Assembly: GCA_965112735.1 (NCBI GenBank)
Contig: OZ218951.1
Span: forward strand, 1,798,001 to 1,862,000
DNA: 64,000 bases
Origin: Phaeosaccion multiseriatum
Taxonomy: Eukaryota; Protista; Ochrophyta, other classes
Reading direction: 5' to 3'
Position 1 is the stretch's first letter. Each line of letters opens with the position of its first letter. Shown here piece by piece: positions 658-64,000 of this stretch. Position numbers and translations under genes: made by a program. Under the pieces are notes generated by a model. That model did not search any database and was not told the DNA's origin. It saw nothing but the letters and a program-made list of their open reading frames with translations.

Positions 658-3600
658 ACTGCAGCAGCTTCTGCTCCTAGAATCGCTGCTGGCGACGACC
701 AGCTGCTCTTTCTGGTCGGACCTGCGAGGAGGGCTGGAGAGTCAAGCAGTCGCTGGAACAGAAGCTCCTCTTGTTCGTCCTCTTGCCTTCTCCTTTGTGG
801 CCCATCGCCCCCCTTCCAGCTGCGGCAGGCGCTGTGCCCCTGACCTATGCAACGTTCCCCCTCTCGTTGTTGCCCGACCGCTACAGCCGCCGTCTTGCTG
901 CCTCGCTCCTCACAACCCCATCGTGTCGTTCTCTCCTGCCCTCCCCTCGCATCTCTTATCCTCTCCTCCTCCTGTTGCTGCTTGTGCTGTATCACCAACT
1001 GCTGCTGCGGCGGCGGCGGCGGCTGCTGTATCACCAACTGCTGCTCTCTCCCCATCCATAGCTCGAAGCGCACAGCGTTGGTGTGCAAGCACAGGAGCAG
1101 ATCGTGGGACAACACCCATCCCATGTCGAATCGCAGCTCGGAGCCGCTCACGCAAGAGAGATCCCAATAGAGCCCCTCCCCTCCATCTTCCCCCTCTCCC
1201 TCCTCCTCGGCATCCCCCCCCCCCTCTCCCTCCTCCTCCTCCTCCTCCTCCTCCTCCTCTCCCTGCCCCTCTTCGCCCCCCCCCTCCTCCCGCTGCTGCT
1301 GCCTTTGCTTCTGCTGCTCCGGGCCGAGTCGTGTTGCTGCCTTCGCCACCGTCGGACTCAAGTCACTAAGGTCCAACCCTCCGTCACCATGGCCCAGGAA
1401 GAAAGCGTAACGCAGCGACAACGCTGATGGCCAAAGGTGATGACCTCTTTGATCTCCCTGTCGGAGAGACTCCCTTTGCTTGTTTTCTCCTCCTCCTCCT
1501 CCTCCTCCTGCTCCTCCTCCTCCTCCTTCTCCTCCTCCTTCTCCTCCTCCACCACCACCACTACCACCGCCACTACCACCGCCACTTCCTCGCTCAGCAT
1601 CTTGCTGGTCGCCCTCGACATCTGCTGCCGTGTCACCAACTGCGGGCCATGGTGCTCCAGAAAGAAGACTGTGGCCAGCGTGAGCTTGAGCATCGTCGTC
1701 GCTGCCTTGCTGCTCAGGAAAGAGGGTGAGGCGCTTCAACTTCACCACAAGCGTCAGACGCTGCTTGTCCGCACTGCTGCCCCCTCTTGTACTCCTACTG
1801 CGACTACAAATGCTGCTGCGGCTGCTGCTGCTGCTGTCGCTGACGATGCTGAAGCGAGCCAAGATTTCGCCCACAACGCCGCCCCCCTCTGGACTCAGTA
1901 GCACCACCCTATGCTCGTCGAGCCTCCCCTTCCCCCTGACGAAGGCTTTGAGATACGCGGCCCCCTCCCCGAGCCTACGGCCACAGCCCAATACATTTCT
2001 GGCCTTGCTCCCCTCCTCCGAGGGCTCTAATTCAGGCTCTTTCTCCCCCTCCCCTTCCTCGTCCTCTTCCTGGTCCTCTTCCTCGTCCTCCTTCTCGTCC
2101 TCCTCGGCACCCTTTACCACCCCAGCCACCGCTGCTGCTGCTGCTGCTGCTGTTGCTGAGTCTACTTGCTGGGCTCCGGCCTTGTTGCTGATCTCTACCG
2201 CCTTTTTCTGCGGCGCCCAAATGGCCTCGTCGAGACAGCCAGTCGACGCTGATGCGCCCGGTCCTACCCCTGCTCCTACTCCTGCCCCCGCTCCCTGTCC
2301 TGTGCCATCATCTCTCTCTCCTTGCACTGTCCATGAGGATGATGATTCGTGACGATGATGATAGAGACGCTTCCTCAGAGCCTCCCTCCACCGCCCGAAA
2401 GCCTCCATGCCGAGCACCAGGCAGACGTTCTCTGCCGCTGTAACGCTCGAAACGGCACTTGAACTTGTCGGACTTGAGCTTTGTGCACCACGTTCAATGC
2501 TAACGACCACCATGGCTCTCTGTTGCACATGAGCTGTACGCACAAGCGGACTCGGCCGCTGCGCCCCCCAGAAGAAAGCAGCAGCGGTAGCAGAGGTACC
2601 TTCGCTTCTCTTGTCGGTAGGCATAGCACCTGCAGACGTCGCCATTGCCTCTACCGCAGCTGTTTCTGCTACTCCTCGGCTCAGCCTCCCCTGCTGTGCC
2701 TCTTCTGCCCCTCCTCCTCCTCCTCCTCCTCCTCGCACATTACCGTCTTGGGTTGCAGCACTGGTGGCCCCATCTCCCTGGACTTGAAAAGCCCCTCCTT
2801 CCTCCTCCTCCCCTCCCTCTACTCCACCTCCTTCACCTCCACCACCCGTCTCTCCCCCCGCGGCTGCCTCTGTGCATGCACCAATGCCAATGGAAATAGC
2901 ACTACTCGCACCCACACCGCCATCCCCACAGCAAGGCTCTAGCACCACGGCGAAACGGCAGGAGCGACCCAGCGCCTCGGCCATTGTGTTGGCTTGCGTG
3001 ACGAGGGGCAGGAGAGTGAGTACCTGTTGAGCAAGCGCAGCGTGGGCTGCCATCCCGGCCCACCGCCGCCTCGCCGCCTGCACCAAGCTGAACTCCTGCT
3101 GCAGTCTATGCTGTGCCGAGAGCTCCGCGACTTTCAGCAGCTGTTCGAGGTTACTTTCCCTCGTCCTCCTTCTTCTCGTCCTCTTACTACTATGGTCACC
3201 GTCGCCGCCGCTACGCTCACTGCTACTTCCATCACTACTGCTTTCGCCGCCACTGTGGCTCCAGGAGGGGTAGTGGTACCACGGTAAGAGCATTCGGCGT
3301 TCACGGGCAGCCTCCTGTTGTTCCTCCTCTCTCTCGTCTCTCCTTCGCTTTTGCTGCGTTCGTTGCTGACTTTCCTCCCTCCTCGCGCGTTCCATCTCCG
3401 CCTTCTTCTCCTCCTCCCACATCCGTCGCTCATTGCTGCTCCTCTCCTTTAGTAGCCTCACCTCTCTGTCCTGCGCCTGCCTCTCCTGCAGCAACTGCTC
3501 CACTTGCCTCTGCAACCTCTGCTCCTCCAAGCCCGCCAACCGTTCCTTCTCTAACCTGACCTTCTCCCTCTTCGCCGCCGCCCTTCTTTCACTCTTTGCC

Positions 3601-53368: not shown

Positions 53369-56300
53369 ATGGTGGTGGTGGAGTTGCTGCTGATGGTGGT
53401 GGTGATGCCGGCCCTGCTGCTGCATGAGCATCTGCTGCTCATGCTGCCGCTGCTGCTGTTGCTGCTGCTGCTGTACAAGCTGCCGCTGCTCTCCCATCTG
53501 CCTGGGCTCCACGCGTGCCCTCTTGTTGCGTGTTTGGGCCAGCACGGGGGTGTTGCCCATGGATGATTGGTGCCGAAGGCGGGAATTTGGATGATAGTCG
53601 ATGGGGGTCGTACCTCTGTCGCCTGCTCCTGCCGCTACTGCTTCTGATGCTGCTGATGCCGATGCTGCTGCTGCTGCTGACGCTGCTGCTGATGCTGCTG
53701 CGTTGCTGCTCGGTGTGAACATCCCAGCGCTGCTCTTGGTCTGGCGAGTGCCCTTGCCTACGCCCTGTTCTGATCCTCCTTCACCAGCGCCGGCGCCCCC
53801 TTTCCCCGAGCCGTGGGGGAAGGCAGCCGTAGAGAGCTTGTACACCCCCGACGACTCCCTCACCCGCATCCGCTTCCGACATGCTCTATTGACGGCTGAG
53901 AATGGATCCTCCGGAGTGCCGAGGGTGCTCGTTCCGAAGATAAAAGTGGGTCGAACCGCCCGGCCGAGAGGTCCGGAGTGGGGCAGCATTTGTGACGAGA
54001 AGCGATCGCCTCTGTACCCCATACACCCCCCCAGTGGTAAGTCATTGGGCACAACCTTGACGCTGATGTTGTTCAAGATACGATGCGTGGTGCTGCCCGG
54101 TGGAGGCAGAGGCGCCACCAGCTCCTGTCGCGCCGGATCGCTCCTACTATTGCTGCCACTGCCCCCGCTGCCACCGCTGTTATCGTTGACGCCCCCACTG
54201 CCCACTCCTCTCTTGCCCGGGGAAGAGTGTTGCTGCAGGTCTCCTCTTCCGCGGAGATTGACCACTCTTCGAGCGTCTTCCACAGTCTGGATTGAGTCCA
54301 CGACCTTTTGCTGCTTGGATACGTTGCGCATGTCCAGAATAAAGTCTTTGGCCGCGTACAGATAAACCTGCACAGTGGATAAGTTGTGGGGGAGGGAGAG
54401 GGGGAGGGGGGCGCTACTTTGGTTGGAGACAAACGGACCTTCCTTTTCATCTCAGCAGAGGCGCCGGAGCAACACTCGGCCCGAAGGGGCACAAGAGGGA
54501 CAACAGTGAGAGCACTTTCGGAAGCATCAAGAAAGAGGGAACACGACAAAACGACAAACACGGTAGGTAGTTAATGCCCCCTCTCACCTTGTTGTAAAAG
54601 CTGATGATGTCTCCCGTAGCCCCGTTCCCCATTCGTATGCTCTTGGTCACGGCATTTTTGCGGACAGAGGTTGGCGGCAGCAGGCTCTGATAGAGGCCCA
54701 CGGGCTCCACCAGTGGGGAGGGCGGCTCCGGTAGGCTCTCATGCAGGTTGGTTCGGTTCTCCTCGAGCAAGTCACTGTAGGCCTTGATGACGCTCTTCAT
54801 GGCGATGCCTGCGTACACTTTGTTGATGCGGCAGATGCTGTACGCGCTGCAGATGATGATCTGCCGGTAGGAGGGGAGGGGAGGGACGGAGAGGGGGTGA
54901 GAGAAGGAGAGAGACAGGAAAAAAATAAATACATCGAAACCGGGGTAATCAATACCCCTTTGCTCCTCCATACAGCACTCTTGCTGCCGCCTCCCTTCTG
55001 CATGGACTAGAAAGCGAACTACGTCCTCACTCACTCACCTGGTCCAAATGTCTCCCCTCCAGCATGCCGTAGTGCTTTGTGATGCAGTGAAGCACCACCG
55101 TCCAGACCTGATTCCCCGCCGACGGGGCCCACTTGAGCTGCTTCAGACACATCCTGTTGATCATGTCTGCGCAATAGAGCACCAACTTCCGCGTGAAGAG
55201 CTCCAGGAAGGTGGAGTGCGGGCCCTTCTTCCTGCCGCCCATGTCTTCGCTCTTCTCCGCTTTGACCACGACTTTCCCCTCCATTTGCTGCTGCTGCCCC
55301 CCCTCCTCACCAGTCTGCGGCTGCCCGTTCTCCTCGTCAGCGCCCCCTTGCCCTTGCCCTTGCCCCTGCCCCTGCCCCTCGGAGGCATTGGCGGCGGCGA
55401 GTGCAGCCATCCAGCCCGACCCACCGTACATCGCCTCATGCTCGAGCGCCGCCGTCGGCCAATCATAGCTCGCCGCAGCGGCACCCTCTGCCTTTCTGTC
55501 CCCACCACGAGCAGCGCCTCTATCACCACTACTATCAGCTTCAGCGTCAGCAGTAGGAGCAGGAGCAGGGGCTCGACTCCCATCGGCCTCAGTGATTAGG
55601 GAGATGAGCGTCGAGCGAGGCTTGCTCCACACGAGGTTAGACACCAGCTCGGCTTGCACTCTCTGCATGTGCTCACTCAACAGGTGGGGCAGGCAGGGGC
55701 AGCACAGGGTGAAGTGGTCCACGACACGCATCATGTCAACGGGGTCCAGCTCCAACGCATCGAGCACCCAGGACAGGGAGTACTCGTCTCCCGTGCGCAC
55801 TGTAGCCAGTACAGCAGGGGCCGGGCAACCATTCAGAGCCTCCGCTTCTGGTGCTCCGTTCAATGACGCCAATCCTCCTGCTACTGCCGCTGCCGCTGCG
55901 GATGCTGCTTTTACGCCGTTTGCTTCGATGGGCCCACGTTGTCCTCCTTTCAGTCCTGTGGCCAGAGCAGACGCGGCGCTTGTAGCTTCTTGCTCCTCCG
56001 CTACAGCTGCGGCCTTCAAAGCCTGCGACTCCAGCACCACCTCGAGACTGCATGCCATGAGCGCCGGGAGCAGATTCCCTTGCTTGAGTAAAGCCGAGTT
56101 GCCTCCCTTTCCTTTCCGCCCCTTCGCCTCGAGAATCAGAACCGTCCGTAGCGTCAGCACCACGAGAGAGGTGGCGGTGGTGGCACACAAACGAAGCGCC
56201 GCCCCCTTCGAAGCTTCGACGGTGCCGTTGCCCTGACCTTCGGCGCTGTGCGATAGGACCAGACCAGACAAGCTCTCCAATTGCCCTTTGACAGCCTCGG

Positions 56301-58470
56301 GATTCACACCCGTACACAGGTCCACGACTTGGCGCATGCACCAGTCCAGCGCACTCGTCGGGAGCGCATTCACCTTGTCCACCCATTCCGCTTCTTGCAT
56401 CGACCCGTGGCCGAACGGGTCCAGCAGAGGATTATCCGATGCCGACGCCTCTGCTGCCTCTGTCTCTGCAACTGTTGCTGCCGCACCTCCTGCCACTCCT
56501 CCCTCAGCCCTTGTTTCGAACACAATTTCAAAAACGTCGTCATCATTCAACCCGCCCATCCTTCCCTTCTTTGTGGTCAGAGGCTCCCTCTCGCACCCCT
56601 CTTCTTTTCTCTGCTCCGCGCCTTCTGCTACACTTTCCCCACATTCCCCCGCCTCCTCCTCCTCCTGCTGCTGCTGCTGCCGCTGCCGCTGCCGCTCCCT
56701 CCAGAACCAGAGGCCCGCGTCGATGTGAGTGATCTCATTGAGTTGCGATTCGTACAAGTCCTTGAGAGAGTCGAGGTTCTTCTTCATCAGCTGCTTGCTC
56801 TCCTCCAGCTTCCCCCTCATGCCCCCTTCTTCCTCCCCCCCCCCCCCTTCCCCGACCTCGTTGGGCGTAAGCAGGCCCTTTGCGAAGAGCCCCTGCAGCA
56901 TGTGGTATACCTTGCCCAGCACGGCAGACGCCACCTCCTCCGGGACCTTGGCGGTCGTAGCGACGCTCTGAGTCCAAGCCAAGGGGATGCGCAGCCCCGC
57001 CGAGGCCTCGCTACCTGCTGCTACTGTTGCTCCTGCTCCGGACTTCGCCACGCCTTCCGTGCCTCCTCCCTGCCCAGCACTTAATGCGGTCGAAGGAGCA
57101 TCCGTAGCAGCGGCAACGGAAGAGGCTTCAGCGGAAGATGCAGTCGCTGCCGCCGCTGCCGCAGCCGCAGGATGTGGTGGTACGTCGACTCCTCCTCCTC
57201 CGCGGATCATTCCCAGCGCAAAGACTGTCTCGAACTCAATAGTACCCATCGCCCCCGATCCCCCTTCTGCCCCTCTGGCATCCTCCCCCGCTGCTGTGAG
57301 CAACGCCATCGCGGTGCTGCCCCTGCCTGAGCTCACTGCGCTGCCCGGGGGAGGGTCGGCCCCGCCGCACAGACAGGGAGAGATGACGAGCGCCGCCACC
57401 AGGGCACTGATGCTCGAGGTCACTTTCACGACAGAGTTTGGGCTGCTGCTGCTGCTCGTGCTGCTGCTGCGGCTGCGGGTGCCCGTTCCCCCGCCCGCTC
57501 CATCTTCAATGGCGTGTTGGCGCTGCTGCGAACGTGTGAAGAGCAGCATGAGGTACCACCCTACTTCACTTGCCATACTTCGGTACTCTGCTTCTTCCGC
57601 TGCCGCTGCTGCTGCTGCTTTCGGCTCTGACTCATGCTCTTTCAGCTGCTGCTGTCGCTGTAGTCGCAGAGCCCGCAACTGGAGGGAGCACACGCGTTGG
57701 AAGAGCCCCTCCCACATACCCGACAGGCACGTGCCCATCACAAGCTGCGACTTTAACGCAAGTGCAGCTGCATTGGTGTACTCCACACTTGGGGTCGAAG
57801 GAAGTGACGACACGGTGGGCTGAGCCTGCAAGACGGTGGCGAAAGTCGGTATGGTCTTGAGAAAGCCTTTGATGCCCACATCCGTGGCTCCAAGGAGGGC
57901 ATTCAAACTCCGCCGCACACTTTCACGAGAGATTCCGTCGCTGCTTCTGCTGCTGCTATCTACTAGCTGCATAAATACGGCGGCCGCTACGGACAGTCTC
58001 TGGCAGTAGCTCGCCTCCTGGGCGGGGGAAGCCTGATGGTAAGAAAGAAGGGGAGCAAGTCTTCCGCGTGAGTGCAAGTGTGGGACGGCACTAGATTGAA
58101 AGAAGAATTCATTGCCCTAGAGCGACACGCCATCAAGAGGCTTCCGGGAAGGTCAAGAGGGGGATAAGGCGGGGGGGGGGGGGGGGTTGGGGAGACAAAC
58201 CAAGTTCACAGGCAAGCAAAGCCGTCCCCTCTCTACACCAACCTTTTGATACTGCTTCTGCTTCCGGGAGTCTCCCACTTCCGGTTGTCGTTGATGCCGC
58301 CACTGCCCTGGCTGACGCCGCAGCTGCATCCGGCCCGCCGCTGCCAAGACCCTCAACTTGGCTCGTGCTCCCTCCAGCTCCGCGGGTTTCAAGTCCAGGG
58401 CCGCGCTGGCTGCTTTCAAGACTAGCTCCCGCACATCCTCCTCCTCGTCGTCCCCTCCATTCTTCTCCAT
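53003..58470 (-). CDS. RBR: Retinoblastoma-related pocket protein
   Basis: Pocket A: LMACSLEVVL and HFTLCCPCLPHLLSEHMQRVQAELVSNLVWS. Pocket B: GRHLDQ|IIICSAYSICRI and DIISFYNK|VYL. C-terminal S/TP sites and a polyQ/H tract. Confidence 0.88.
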
Positions 58471-58864: not shown

Positions 58865-59805
58865 ATGCGGGGCTGGAAAGCGCTCCTCGGCTTCTTCCTC
58901 GTGGGGACGCAGCAGCAGCTTGCCTCCGCTCAGCTTCTCTGGACCTCTCTGGGCCGCTATCCCGGCGCCGACGATGCTCGGGTCAATGGCACAATAGTGT
59001 TCAGCAATGCCTTTAACGAGTTGACACCAGTGGGAGGGGTGAGGATGGGGGGAACTATTGTAGGGCTGGAGGCCAGCGCGACGGGCGGCATTCACGTGCA
59101 TGAAGGTAAAGGCGGAGGTCCAAAGTCCTCTTTATTTTATTTTTTTATTTGGTTCTAACGCCATTTAATGTTATTCGCCCTCGGGACCTCCCTCCTCCGC
59201 AGGCTTCACGTGCTCCGACGCAGAAGAGGTCGGGGGGCACTACTACACGGACGACATTGGCTTTGACCCTTGGGAAACCACCACTTGGGCCTCCGATGAG
59301 AATGGAGTGGCCTCCCTCGGAGTCTACGTCCCTTTCTACACGTTGAGTGAAGCATTCCCCATTGCGGGACGGGCCGTAGTCGTGCATAACTCCGACGGGG
59401 ATCGAGTGGCCTGCGGGCTGCTTGCCGTGACCAGTGGGGAGGTGATTGAGCTGGGACGGTACCCGGGATACTCAGCGTCGGGCTTCAACACCAGCGGCAC
59501 CCTCGTCGTGGAGGAGACGGACAGCGGAGTCAGCATCACCGGTACGGTGGGCGGCGTTGATGAGAGCTCTATGGGCGGACTGCACGTGCACTCAGGCTGG
59601 ACATGTGACGACGCCTCGGGGGTGGGGGGGCATTACTGGGAGACTGGGGAGGACCCCTGGACCGACGAGTGGACCTCGGACGAGAATGGCGCAGCCTTGG
59701 TGTCTCTCAGTCAGGAAAGCTTCTCTCTGCATGACAGCCTGCCCGTGTCCGGTCGGGCCTTTGTGGTGCACGCTGCTAACGGCTCAAGGTGAGTGGACAC
59801 CGCTC

Positions 59806-59841
<36 letters not shown>

Positions 59842-62659
59842 GTGTTGGTGGTGGTGGTGGTGGTGGTGGTGGTGGCGGTGGTAAATGGCCCATGATTGCC
59901 GTTCTGCCGCGTGCCCATTCCGCTTGGTTCTGTGGCGCAGCTGCAGAGCTCACCCCCTGTCTTTATATTCACCAATACCTCTCTCTCCCATATCGCCTGG
60001 CTCCTCATCACGCTTGCTCTTTCTTGCCGTGTACGTCCCTCCAACGACCCGCTCACCAACACACACAGGACGGCATGTGGCATTGTCGGCTCCGGCAAGA
60101 CTGCCTGGACCTCGCTGGGCCTCTATCCCGACGCGGAAGACGCTGGAGTCAACGGCACTGTCGTGTTCACCCTTGCCAACGCCACTGTGGACGAAGGCGG
60201 GGTGATAATGGGTGGAACCCTTGTAGGGCTTGAGGCCGGTGCGACGGGCGGCATTCACGTGCATGAAGGTATGGCGAGTGTCCCTGTGTGGATACCGAAG
60301 AGTGTTGCTGGTTTGGAGCGGCGATACTTTTTAGAGATACCATGATACACTCACTCATTCGCCCTCCCCTCTGTCCTGGCTCCTCCTCCCTCCTCCGCAG
60401 GCTTTACGTGCTCCGACGCAGAAGAGGTCGGGGGGCACTACTACACGGACGACATTGGCTTTGACCCTTGGGAAACCACCACTTGGGCCTCCGATGAGAA
60501 TGGAGTGGCCTCCCTCGGAGTCTACGTCCCTTTCTACACGTTGAGTGAAGCATTCCCCATTGCGGGACGGGCCGTAGTCGTGCACAACTCCGACGGGGAT
60601 CGAGTGGCCTGCGGGCTGCTTGCCGTGACCAGTGGGGAGGTGATTGAGCTGGGACGGTACCCGGGATACTCAGCGTCGGGCTTCAACACCAGCGGCACCC
60701 TCGTCGTGGAGGAGACGGACAGCGGAGTCAGCATCACCGGTACGGTGGGCGGCGTTGATGAGAGCTCTATGGGCGGACTGCACGTGCACTCAGGCTGGAC
60801 ATGTGACGACGCCTCGGGTGTGGGGGGGCATTACTGGGAGACTGGGGAGGACCCCTGGACCGACGAGTGGACCTCGGACGACAATGGCGCAGCCTTGGTG
60901 TCTCTCAGTCAGGAAGATTTCTCTCTGCGTGACAGCCTGCCCGTGTCCGGTCGGGCCTTTGTGGTGCACGCTGCTAACGGCTCAAGGTGAGTGGACACTG
61001 CCGCTTTGCTGCTGCTGGTGTTGGTGTTGGTGGTGTTGGTGGTGGTGGTGAACGAGGACTCGTGATTGCCACGGAACCGGCCCTTGCTGCTGGCTACGTA
61101 TTCACCGATGTGCATCTGTATCTATGTGGTGCCGCCTGGCTTCTCATGACGCTCACCTGTTCTCTCTCTCTCAATCTCTTCCCCCCGCCTCTCTCCCCCT
61201 CTCTCTCCGTCTCTCTCCACTTCCTCACCATGACCCTCACTCGCTCTCAATGACGTCCCCCATAGGATGGCATGTGGCATTATCGGCTCCGGCAAGACTG
61301 CCTGGACCTCGCTGGGCCTCTATCCCGATGCGGAAGACGCTGGAGTCAATGGCACTGTCGTGTTCACCCTTGCCGACAACGCCACTGTGGACGAAGGCGG
61401 GGTGATAATGGGTGGAACCCTTGTAGGGCTGGAGGCCAGCACGACGGGCGGCATTCACGTGCATGAAGGTATGGCGAGAGCCCAAATGTTCCGTGGTTGT
61501 TAACGCTGTTCTAATGCCATGATACCCCTACTCATTCGCCCTCCCCTCTGTCCTGGCTCCTCCTCCCTCCTCCGCAGGCTTCACGTGCTCCGACGCAGAA
61601 GGGGTCGGGGGGCACTACTACACGGACGACATTGGCTTTGACCCTTGGGAAACCACCACTTGGGCCTCCGATGAGAATGGAGTGGCCTCCCTCGGAGTCT
61701 ACGTCCCTTTCTACACGTTGAGTGAAGCATTCCCCATCGCGGGCCGGGCCGTAGTCGTGCACAACTCCGACGGGGATCGAGTGGCCTGCGGGCTGCTTGC
61801 CGTGACCAGTGGGGAGGTGATTGAGCTGGGACGGTACCCGGGATACTCAGCGTCGGGCTTCAACACCAGTGGCACCCTCGTTGTGGAGGAGACGGACAGC
61901 GGAGTCAGCATCACCGGTACGGTGGGCGGCGTTGATGAGAGCTCTATGGGCGGACTGCACGTGCACTCAGGCTGGACATGTGACGACGCCTCGGGTGTGG
62001 GGGGGTATTACTGGGAGACTGGGGAGGACCCCTGGACCGACGAGTGGACCTCGGACGACAATGGCGCAGCCTTGGTGTCTCTCAGTCAGGAAGGCTTCTC
62101 TCTGCATGACAGCCTGCCCGTGTCCGGTCGGGCCTTTGTGGTGCACGCTGCTAACGGCTCAAGGTGAGTGGACACCGCTCTTGCTGCTGCTGTTGGTGTT
62201 GGTGTTGTTGTTGGTGTTGGTGGTGGTGGTGGTGGTGGTGGTGGTGGTGGTGGTCAATGAGGACTCGTGATTGCGGCTAAGCCGCACGCCCAGTAAGCTT
62301 CCTCCAGGACGAAGTCGCGGCTATCGGTGTTCCAATGGCCCCTCACTACGTTCATGCGCGCACACACGCGCACTCACACGCATGCACACACGCACACACG
62401 CACACACGCACACGCACACACGCACACGCATACGCGCGCACACACACACAGGACCGCATGTGGCATTGTGTCTTCACAGGTATCCATGAGCAAAGCTGCC
62501 TCAGTAGGGACCTCTGCAGATGGGGATGCTCCAGAGTCCGATCCGGTGGATGAGGCAGGCGAGAACAGCGCTGTTGCTCAAGGAGGAAGCTGCCATCGTG
62601 GCTGGCTTGGCGGGGTCTGGAGCTTCCTGGCGGGTGCACTGGTGCTCATGTTGTGGTAG
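58865..62659 (+). CDS. Secreted, probably GPI- or TM-anchored protein with six Cu/Zn-SOD-fold (Cu-only type) domains
   Basis: Signal peptide MRGWKALLGFFLVGTQQQLASA. Six repeats of G(I/L)HVH-x-G-x-TC...GGHY...GRA(V/F)VVH...G.R.ACG. Hydrophobic C-terminus WLGGVWSFLAGALVLMLW*. Confidence 0.88.
59040..62270 (+). repeat. Near-identical ~1.19-kb tandem triplication (two SOD domains plus two introns per unit)
   Basis: Equivalent 161-aa ORFs at 59307, 60505 and 61682 differ at only a few residues. Intron ends are also similar between units. Confidence 0.95.
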
Positions 62660-63168: not shown

Positions 63169-64000
63169 TCAGTCCTCGCAGTCACAGGGGTGGCCATTCG
63201 CGTGCACCCACTGCTTCATCTCCTCGAAGGTCACATTCCTCCCTGCCTCCCACGCACCCACTTTGAGCAGCACCTCAGGGCAAGAGAGTGCGCCCCATGG
63301 ACACACAACGCTCTCCGATCGCAGCCACTGCAAGACCGTCAGGCTCTTCGCGGCCTCGACCGCAACCTCACAGACCATTTCGTCCCAGTCGCACAGGTCA
63401 CGAGCGTTTGCGTGCAGCCAGCGCAGCACCTCCAAGTGCCCCCTCGTCGAGGCCCACATCGCCCCCCATCGCCACTCGCTGTCTCCCTCTGCCGCCTCCA
63501 GCTCAGGCCTGACCCTGGGGTGAGTCAGAAGCATCTGCAGCACATTGACATGTCCCTCTTGGGCAGCCCACACCCACACACTCGCATCGAATGGGGCGTT
63601 CGCCTCATCCAACAGCAGCCACGTGAGCATGTCCACGTCCCCTCTCTGTGCGGCCTCGCCACAAGTCGTCTCGTTCCACGGGCAGGGGCCTCTGTCCGGC
63701 AGATTTCCCGATCGGAGCCACTTGAGAATGCTCAGGCCGTGTTTGGCGTTTCGGGCAGCAGCTGCGCACACGTCCTCATCCCATGCACAGCCGTTGCGAT
63801 GGAGGACCTCGCAGGCGCTCACGTCCCCCCACCAAGCTGCAGCTCTGAACGTGTCGACGGTCAATGGACAGCCCTGCGTGATGGCCCAGTTGAGGCACGC
63901 CACAGATCCCAGTACGCTTCGACGAAGAGCCGTCTCCAACCCAGGATATGCGGCGCTGTACACTCGCCTCCAATCCTTGCTGACGGCAGCGACGAAGACG
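63169..64000 (-). CDS. Ankyrin-repeat protein (CPWDE-type repeats); 5' end beyond the right edge
   Basis: Repeats CAWDEDVCAAAA...LKWLR, CPWNETTCGEAAQRGDVDMLTWL, AAQEGHVNVLQML, GHLEVLRWLH, CDWDEMVCEVA. No introns in the visible part. Confidence 0.85.
   Translation of the reverse strand, partial: VFVAAVSKDWRRVYSAAYPGLETALRRSVLGSVACLNWAITQGCPLTVDTFRAAAWWGDVSACEVLHRNGCAWDEDVCAAAARNAKHGLSILKWLRSGNLPDRGPCPWNETTCGEAAQRGDVDMLTWLLLDEANAPFDASVWVWAAQEGHVNVLQMLLTHPRVRPELEAAEGDSEWRWGAMWASTRGHLEVLRWLHANARDLCDWDEMVCEVAVEAAKSLTVLQWLRSESVVCPWGALSCPEVLLKVGAWEAGRNVTFEEMKQWVHANGHPCDCED

Follow-up and report, generated by a model that had tools for sequence, protein, structure and literature searches.

A gene for a six-domain, copper-only-type superoxide dismutase repeat protein in the alga Phaeosaccion multiseriatum and its family across protists

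According to surveys published up to 2026, copper-only superoxide dismutases (SODs) are confined to fungi and oomycetes, and the SOD-repeat proteins known as CSRPs to animals and Capsaspora (PMC13017621, PMC12217663). A cross-kingdom survey that included diatoms placed CSRPs in animals only (PMC7730656), and an algal review likewise gives copper-only SODs from fungi and oomycetes only (PMC8873139). SOD5 of Candida and the oyster CSRP, which carry the same deletions as the domains described here, are active and efficient extracellular SODs that receive their copper outside the cell (PMC13017621, PMC12217663). No account of such SOD-repeat proteins from algae or other protists turned up in our literature searches. 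Here we analyse such a gene in the ochrophyte Phaeosaccion multiseriatum, within a stretch of 64,000 nucleotides (assembly GCA_965112735.1, contig OZ218951.1, positions 1,798,001 to 1,862,000 of the forward strand; hereafter the window). An original prediction, made from the letters of the window alone, had seen a six-domain SOD-repeat protein of a probable alga at positions 58865-62659. The gene model, the Pfam scores and the fold match all agree with the six-domain protein, and the genome, with at least 54 matches to LHC genes, is that of an alga. We consider it probable, if by no means certain, that the product is a secreted, surface-anchored SOD of the copper-only kind, acting outside the cell in the manner of SOD5 or the animal CSRPs.

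The gene, its domains and their active site

The gene (window 58865-62659, forward strand) consists of seven exons with 2610 nt of coding sequence for 869 amino acids and one terminal stop; all six introns have GT..AG borders and the reading frame is open throughout (Table 1). Database, family, structure and fold queries were made with single exons, while the joined 869-residue model served for the frame check, for cutting the domains and for local comparison. The order in the protein is a predicted signal peptide, six adjoining Sod_Cu domains arranged as (A,B)x3, an acidic stalk and a hydrophobic C-terminal tail. The domains lie at residues 25-154, 155-282, 283-416, 417-544, 545-679 and 680-807, are about 128-135 residues long each and are separated by linkers of approximately 3-6 residues (..ACGLLAV-TSG-EVIELG.. 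and ..ACGIV-GSGKTA-WTSLG..). A search with the Pfam profile Sod_Cu (PF00080), which had been suggested together with the original prediction, gave 47.1, 46.9 and 42.0 bits for the large exons 2, 4 and 6, compared with a gathering cut-off of 28.9.

No domain lies within a single exon, and domain 2 was modelled without its last strand and second cysteine, from an input alignment of 132 related domains. The top Foldseek matches of the model were Cu/Zn SODs only, with TM-scores up to 0.80 (0.80 to EC-SOD), and realignment to human SOD1 gave Z 14.5 and a root-mean-square deviation (rmsd) of 2.1 A over 110 of 120 residues at 27-30% identity. The best realigned matches were metal-deficient SOD1 chains with disordered loops IV and VII, as would be expected for a domain in which those loops are lacking. 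An unbiased comparison covered 48,161 chains. All 15 matches at Z>=8 belonged to the SOD family and the next fold reached Z 5.7; SOD1 was found at Z 13.3 with 28% identity, and Candida SOD5 (4N3T) at Z 11.1 with 20% identity and an rmsd of 2.9 A over 112 residues. SOD5 was not among the 28 phmmer matches nor among the best 60 profile matches in the PDB. Judging from the model, each domain is a SOD Greek-key beta-barrel, the fold on which the original prediction had made itself dependent. Apart from these comparisons, an ESM Atlas cluster of 65 phage (Uroviricota) proteins of about 547 residues, carrying Sod_Cu and DUF6267, has a TM-score of 0.79 to the domain model.

At the sequence level, the HxH pair, the last histidine, both cysteines and the arginine are kept in six of six domains and the bridging histidine in five, giving 23 of 24 copper-ligand histidines, 12 of 12 cysteines and 6 of 6 arginines. 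These positions correspond to His46, His48, His63 and His120, to the pair Cys57-Cys146 and to Arg143 of SOD1. The residues concerned are His77 and His79 (HVH), Cys84, His93 (GGHY), His142 (VVH), Arg148 and Cys151 in domain 1, and His208, His210, Cys215, His224, His270, Arg276 and Cys279 in domain 2. Domains 1, 3 and 5 (A type) follow the pattern GGIHVHEGFTC...GGHYY...DPWETTTW...GRAVVVHNSDGDRVACG, and domains 2, 4 and 6 (B type) the pattern GGLHVHSGWTC...GGHYW...EDPWTDEW...GRAFVVHAANGSRTACG. The original prediction was right in assigning the disulfide cysteines and the catalytic arginine to each domain; its statement that each domain also keeps the copper ligands holds for domains 1-5 and fails in domain 6, where tyrosine (Tyr749, in GGYYW) stands in place of the bridging histidine.

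The loop after the bridging histidine contains no histidine before strand 5, and both histidine-bearing segments of SOD1 fall in deletions of the HMMER alignment. Alignments to bovine and human SOD1, together with a count of residues, show two differences. From the bridging histidine to the conserved glycine there are 22 residues in the A type and 19 in the B type, compared with 30 in SOD1 (8-11 shorter), and from the last copper histidine to the arginine there are 6 (VVHNSDGDR, VVHAANGSR), compared with 23 in human SOD1 (17 shorter). The missing loop histidine and the two shortened stretches together indicate that the zinc-site histidine ligands and the electrostatic loop are absent, in agreement with the earlier claim for each domain. 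As loop IV is itself shortened, the domains are also more reduced than SOD5, as had been proposed.

The aspartate that SOD5 retains had been reported as not findable. It is probably present as the aspartate of the DPW motif, which lies within the shortened loop IV and is followed by the last copper histidine 40 residues on in A-type and 39 in B-type domains; in SOD1, Asp83 and His120 are 37 residues apart. In the oyster CSRP the remnant of the zinc site, Asp-342, is spaced 39 residues from His-381 (PMC12217663), and in copper-only SODs this remnant aspartate orients a copper-ligand histidine (PMC13017621). We read the DPW aspartate as the same remnant that SOD5 and the CSRP have retained because it is invariant in the family (see below) and because its spacing to the last copper histidine matches. 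The HMMER alignment pairs it with an earlier aspartate of loop IV.

For comparison with read contigs, 4,101 letters of the window were supplied. Contigs from one metatranscriptome RNA run were 93-96% identical to the exons, their source being a close relative and not this strain. Two of these contigs span introns, joining 61466(+2) to 59201(+2) and 60984(+2) to 60067(+2), which, once the repeat ambiguity is allowed for, reproduces both junction types of the gene model exactly (HVHE-G/G-FTC and NGS-R/TACG). The relative's contigs differ from the window at 18 positions, of which 17 are synonymous and one is a conservative change from Ser to Thr (third-position excess, binomial p about 1e-7). Because RNA contigs cross the introns and the differences are nearly all synonymous, the same gene is expressed and spliced in a close relative and is under purifying selection. 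A pseudogene was rejected on the grounds of the intact frame and this selection, and chance is excluded by the Pfam scores, the fold match at Z 14.5 and the 17 synonymous against one non-synonymous differences. The three large exons collapse into a single contig in short-read assemblies, so that the number of repeats is hard to assemble and the triplication or the open frame might be thought to come from an assembly artefact or a decaying tandem duplicate. This is scarcely credible, as three DNA-like runs are identical to the window with the introns covered, and in all three the depth of the collapsed contig is 2.5-3.0 times that of its unique flanks, which fits three copies of the large exon. 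In addition, the three units have quite different introns, which mis-assembly would not produce, the splice sites are canonical and nothing breaks the frame, and six-domain relatives are collinear over about 790 residues.

Table 1. Positions in the window of the SOD-repeat gene and its parts
Feature	Positions	Strand	Remarks
Whole coding region, six-domain SOD-repeat gene	58865..62659	+	Frame open across GT..AG introns
Exon 1: signal peptide and N-terminal half of domain 1, up to HVHE-G	58865..59105	+	
Predicted signal peptide, residues 1-22, ASA/Q cleavage motif, no Phe at +1	58865..58930	+	Heuristic reading; relatives' N-termini similar
Intron 1, type 1, phase 1, splits HVHEG/FTC	59106..59202	+	Junction type spliced in RNA contig
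Exon 2 (586 nt): C-terminal two thirds of domain 1 and domain 2 to ..ANGS-R	59203..59788	+	Sod_Cu 47.1 bits
Domain 2 (B type) without last strand, piece modelled with AlphaFold2	59430..59789	+	pLDDT 94, pTM 0.85
Intron 2, type 2, phase 2, many (TGC)n/(TGG)n microsatellites	59789..60068	+	Junction type spliced in RNA contig
Exon 3: last strand of domain 2 and N-terminal half of domain 3	60069..60268	+	
Exon 4 (586 nt): remainder of domain 3 and domain 4	60401..60986	+	98.6% identity to exon 2
Type-2 intron after exon 4	60987..61265	+	
Exon 5: last strand of domain 4 and N-terminal half of domain 5	61266..61468	+	
Exon 6 (586 nt): remainder of domain 5 and domain 6	61578..62163	+	98.3% identity to exons 2 and 4
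TAT codon (Tyr749) in place of the bridging-His CAT, domain 6	62006..62008	+	Assembly base; short-read contigs merge the three copies
Type-2 intron after exon 6	62164..62451	+	
Exon 7: last strand of domain 6, acidic Ser/Ala/Asp-rich stalk, GGS small-residue site, hydrophobic C-terminal tail, stop	62452..62659	+	

The protist family and the three repeated units

The original prediction had inferred an independently evolved SOD-repeat protein in a probable alga. The gene does not stand alone in this alga; it is a member of an undescribed protist family that has a loop design of its own. An exhaustive search of cluster representatives with exon 2 gave 1283 matches at E<=1e-3, at least 566 at E<=1e-10 and 141 at E<=1e-30, most of the representatives having several matched stretches, up to 23; a word search with the same exon found five short matches only. 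The family is spread over at least five major lineages, with members in pelagophytes, dinoflagellates, haptophytes, prasinophytes, Rhizaria and others. It includes three proteins of Aureococcus (JL722_8828 and JL722_619 among them), CYMTET_43449 of Cymbomonas, and proteins of Emiliania, Prorocentrum and Symbiodinium. Further members come from transcriptomes labelled Alexandrium margalefii (MMETSP0661 CAMPEP_0204533988) and Yihiella, from Mataza (Rhizaria), the labyrinthulid Mucochytrium (A0A7S2WT74), the diplonemid Namystynia and the choanoflagellate Bicosta, and many more from Tara and JGI ocean assemblies. They are annotated only as 'hypothetical protein' or 'SOD copper/zinc binding domain-containing protein'.

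The nearest full-length relatives (P0158, P0001, P0156, P0161 and P0157) have six domains and are collinear over about 790 residues at 43-47% identity; the Alexandrium-labelled proteins resemble the Phaeosaccion protein in having six collinear domains at about 43% identity. In general, the protist relatives share DPW-type domains in 2-23 repeats, a signal peptide and a C-terminal anchor, and they differ in the number of domains and in the type of anchor, all of them having a signal peptide and either the same hydrophobic tail or a transmembrane helix with a cytosolic tail of 27-60 residues. A paralog with 39-55% identity per exon (C2:1929072-1932754) follows about 67-70 kb downstream in the same genome, on the contig and strand of the six-domain gene.

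Conservation was counted in 450 near-complete domains cut from the fetched relatives. All four histidines are kept in 421 of them (94%), the first cysteine in 438 and the second in 433, the aspartate of the DPW motif in 439 and its tryptophan in 436; at the position of the catalytic arginine, 371 domains have Arg and 49 Lys, 420 together. It has to be considered whether the SOD barrel is reused here in a metal-independent structural, adhesion or recognition protein, as in oyster dominin or the copper-less CSRPs of arthropods and tardigrades. Inactive proteins of the SOD fold do exist (PMC13017621), and domain 6 has lost a ligand. However, such a role is very unlikely for a protein with 23 of 24 ligands intact, whose relatives keep the four histidines in 94% of their domains and whose differences to the expressed relative are nearly all synonymous.

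In a DPW-type protein filed under the choanoflagellate Bicosta minor (P0198, EukProt), the N-terminal 270 residues resemble a mistranslated low-complexity stretch. The nearest relatives of this protein are proteins of the green alga Cymbomonas and not the animal CSRPs, and the search started from it returned protist proteins only and no animal protein. It may be a sequence of prey or contaminant origin or a true opisthokont member.

Within the Phaeosaccion gene, the 586-nt exons 2, 4 and 6 have 98.3-98.6% identity and differ at 3-6 synonymous sites. The introns between the large exons share 51-79% identity and exon 1 is 75% identical to exons 3 and 5; among the type-2 introns identity is 51-65%, and their microsatellites are unlike ((TGC)n, (TGG)n and (CA)n-like). 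A sliding comparison places a jump in identity, 45-68% on one side and 97-100% on the other, no more than a few tens of bases away from the borders of the large exon. On this pattern, gene conversion restricted to the large exon is the best explanation of the near-identity of the units. In the domain tree, A-type domains group with the odd-numbered domains of the relatives and B-type domains with the even-numbered ones, the gene's own three A and three B domains each forming a tight cluster, and it follows that the A-B pair is old and the six-domain layout common to the relatives. The exon-limited homogenisation of three units provides a clean case of concerted evolution within one gene.

Predicted surface location, probable function and genomic surroundings

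The N-terminus (MRGWK-ALLGFFLVG-TQQQLASA/Q) resembles a signal peptide and the hydrophobic C-terminus (...AQGGSCHRGW-LGGVWSFLAGALVLMLW, followed by the stop) a glycosylphosphatidylinositol (GPI)-type or membrane anchor. These motifs, read by eye and with hydropathy, fit the signal peptide and GPI-like tail of the original prediction. The stalk comprises residues 808-846 and the tail residues 847-869. A plastid-targeted protein was considered and rejected, as no Phe follows the signal cleavage site. The protein has 11 N-X-S/T sequons, and its ectodomain contains 117 Asp/Glu against 22 Lys/Arg. The 25 histidines of the mature protein consist of the 23 copper ligands and two others, and its 12 cysteines make six pairs. 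Among the genes of this alga are those for the GPI transamidase subunits Gpi16/PIG-T and PIG-U (C16:556799-558469; C8:1259754-1260227; C2:1078943-1081051), and the genome also has at least seven matches to the NAD-binding domain of the NOX/ferric-reductase type.

It seems that the protein would be a secreted glycoprotein on the outer face of the plasma membrane, anchored there through GPI or through a C-terminal helix without a tail, with six tandem copper-only-type SOD domains exposed. With the four-histidine copper site, the disulfide and the catalytic arginine kept, and the zinc-site histidines and the electrostatic lid lost, the copper would be exposed to solvent as in SOD5 and the CSRPs, and the apo-protein would take it up outside the cell. 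Here the invariant DPW aspartate may replace that of the zinc site in orienting a histidine. Extracellular superoxide, whether produced by NOX-type enzymes or photochemically, would be dismutated to O2 and H2O2 at the cell surface; phytoplankton are known to produce extracellular superoxide (PMC6697786, PMC7035516). Domain 6, with its change from His to Tyr, is probably weakened or inactive, and the three two-domain units would be held nearly identical via gene conversion in the large exon. The catalytic arginine kept throughout the family argues for catalysis over mere copper binding, as it is needed for the former and not for the latter.

The main rival is that six open four-histidine sites on an acidic scaffold capture, buffer or pass on copper at the surface, for uptake or detoxification, and that SOD activity is incidental. 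The highly acidic ectodomain points in this direction, as does the multivalency (six sites here and up to 23 domains in relatives), which suits capacity over catalysis, and the open sites of copper-only SODs bind copper weakly and are loaded extracellularly (PMC13017621). In contrast, copper binding alone requires neither the arginine or lysine found in 420 of the related domains nor the channel-shaping disulfide, both of which are kept, and all tested proteins of this site design have been fast SODs (PMC13017621, PMC12217663). We therefore regard copper handling as unlikely, although it deserves more attention than a purely structural role.

Several observations weigh against an extracellular SOD of the SOD5 or CSRP kind. 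Domain 6 is missing one copper ligand. The glutamate of the E110/D113 pair of SOD5 has no conserved counterpart, there being none three residues before the DPW aspartate, and SOD5 and the CSRP both have a much longer loop IV; the second shell of the active site thus differs, which could alter copper retention or pH dependence. The strongly acidic ectodomain would draw Cu2+ but not superoxide. The signal peptide and the GPI signal are readings by eye and hydropathy, the RNA support comes from a metatranscriptome relative at 93-96% identity and not from this strain, and Gaa1 (PF04114) had no match in the genome, which is not proof of its absence. If the protein nevertheless acts as a surface dismutase, it would set the lifetime of superoxide, of which phytoplankton release large amounts, and the resulting H2O2 at the cell surface, under a control tied to copper availability. 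The DPW motif in combination with a very short loop IV also offers a natural experiment on the minimal remainder of the zinc site that a copper-only SOD needs.

Besides the paralog, the sole other Sod_Cu match in the genome is a SOD1-like gene on contig 12 in which three metal ligands are lost (C12:1725315-1725900; locus L001 about 940-1860, forward strand). It has at least four exons and keeps the equivalents of His46, His48, His71 and Asp83, and the replaced ligands are the bridging His by Ile (SAGGIFNPF), His80 by Met (RMVGDLGN) and His120 by Lys (IVVKAGEDDLG). Such a set of residues suggests a degenerate SOD, or one resembling CCS domain II, and not an active Cu/Zn SOD. A canonical Cu/Zn SOD was not picked up by the Sod_Cu search of the genome, which gives a lower bound. 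The genes next to the SOD-repeat gene are unrelated to it. Both lie on the opposite strand. An RB-like (retinoblastoma) open reading frame (window 55027-58077), whose RB_A and RB_B pocket domains are accompanied by very long low-complexity inserts rich in Ala, Gly and Gln, ends some 800 bp upstream, and an ankyrin-repeat open reading frame (window 63169-63963; Ank_2, E 9.5e-15) lies just downstream.

Comparison with fungal, animal and canonical enzymes

The occurrence of the same design in algae and other protists means either that copper-only SODs originated well before the opisthokonts or that there has been striking convergence. An origin independent of the fungal and animal copper-only SODs is plausible from the comparison of sequences and folds. 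The alternative is one event of zinc-site and electrostatic-loop loss, common with the opisthokont copper-only SODs and CSRPs and reaching protists via a pre-opisthokont ancestor or horizontal transfer. In its favour, the two deletions, the tandem short-linker architecture and the layout of signal peptide plus anchor are those of the CSRPs (PMC13017621), the conserved aspartate stands at a CSRP-like 39-40 residues from the last histidine, and a DPW-type protein is filed under Bicosta minor. However, the Phaeosaccion domain is closer to SOD1 (Z 13.3, 28%) than to SOD5 (Z 11.1, 20%), and SOD5 is missing from the 28 phmmer matches and the best 60 PDB profile matches. Compared with SOD1, loop IV is reduced by 8-11 residues, whereas SOD5 and the CSRP keep it long (26 residues in the oyster against 7-9 here), and the Bicosta protein has green-algal nearest relatives and no animal protein in its search. 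A shared origin is thus doubtful. We would also propose, tentatively and with less confidence than we place in the function of the Phaeosaccion protein, that the DPW proteins as a class are pan-protist anchored copper-only SODs, independent of the SOD5/CSRP lineage, which serve as an enzymatic sink or regulator of superoxide at the surface of phytoplankton. If so, marine fluxes of superoxide and H2O2 and the redox cycling of Fe and Cu would be linked to copper supply.

Regarding the described systems, the domains belong to the Sod_Cu superfamily and not to the bimetallic Cu/Zn SODs. Human SOD1 and EC-SOD are the best structural and sequence matches and have the same copper ligands, disulfide and arginine (Arg143). 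In contrast to them, the Phaeosaccion domains have lost the segments with the zinc ligands His71 and His80, their loop VII is 17 residues shorter and without Glu132, Glu133, Lys136 and Thr137, and the protein is multidomain and predicted to be membrane-tethered. With SOD5 of Candida albicans (PDB 4N3T) they share the fold, the four-histidine copper site, the disulfide and the arginine, the lack of a zinc site and the abbreviated electrostatic loop; the extracellular location and GPI-type anchor of SOD5 are predicted for the Phaeosaccion protein too. SOD5 is, however, a single-domain protein of about 25 kDa with a full-length loop IV carrying E110/D113 and 20% identity to the Phaeosaccion domain, which is closer to SOD1 in both sequence and structure. 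The copper site without a zinc site and the short electrostatic loop are accordingly of the SOD5 type, but the single domain and the closest relationship to SOD5 are not found.

The architecture, as read from the sequence, is that of a CSRP. Like the CSRPs of Crassostrea and other animals, the protein consists of tandem SOD barrels (4-12 in animals, six here) with very short linkers, has lost the zinc-ligand histidines and the extended electrostatic loop, keeps the disulfide and the copper site in most repeats with some repeats degenerate, and, from motifs read by eye and hydropathy, is predicted to have a signal peptide and to be GPI-anchored or secreted. It differs in occurring in an alga, outside the opisthokonts (PMC13017621, PMC12217663, PMC7730656). 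In the Crassostrea CSRP, 26 residues separate the bridging histidine from the aspartate (His-316 to Asp-342), compared with 7-9 in Phaeosaccion, where the DPW motif is invariant and has no conserved glutamate partner. Finally, the repeats within one oyster molecule are 38-56% similar, whereas those of the Phaeosaccion protein are 98% identical.

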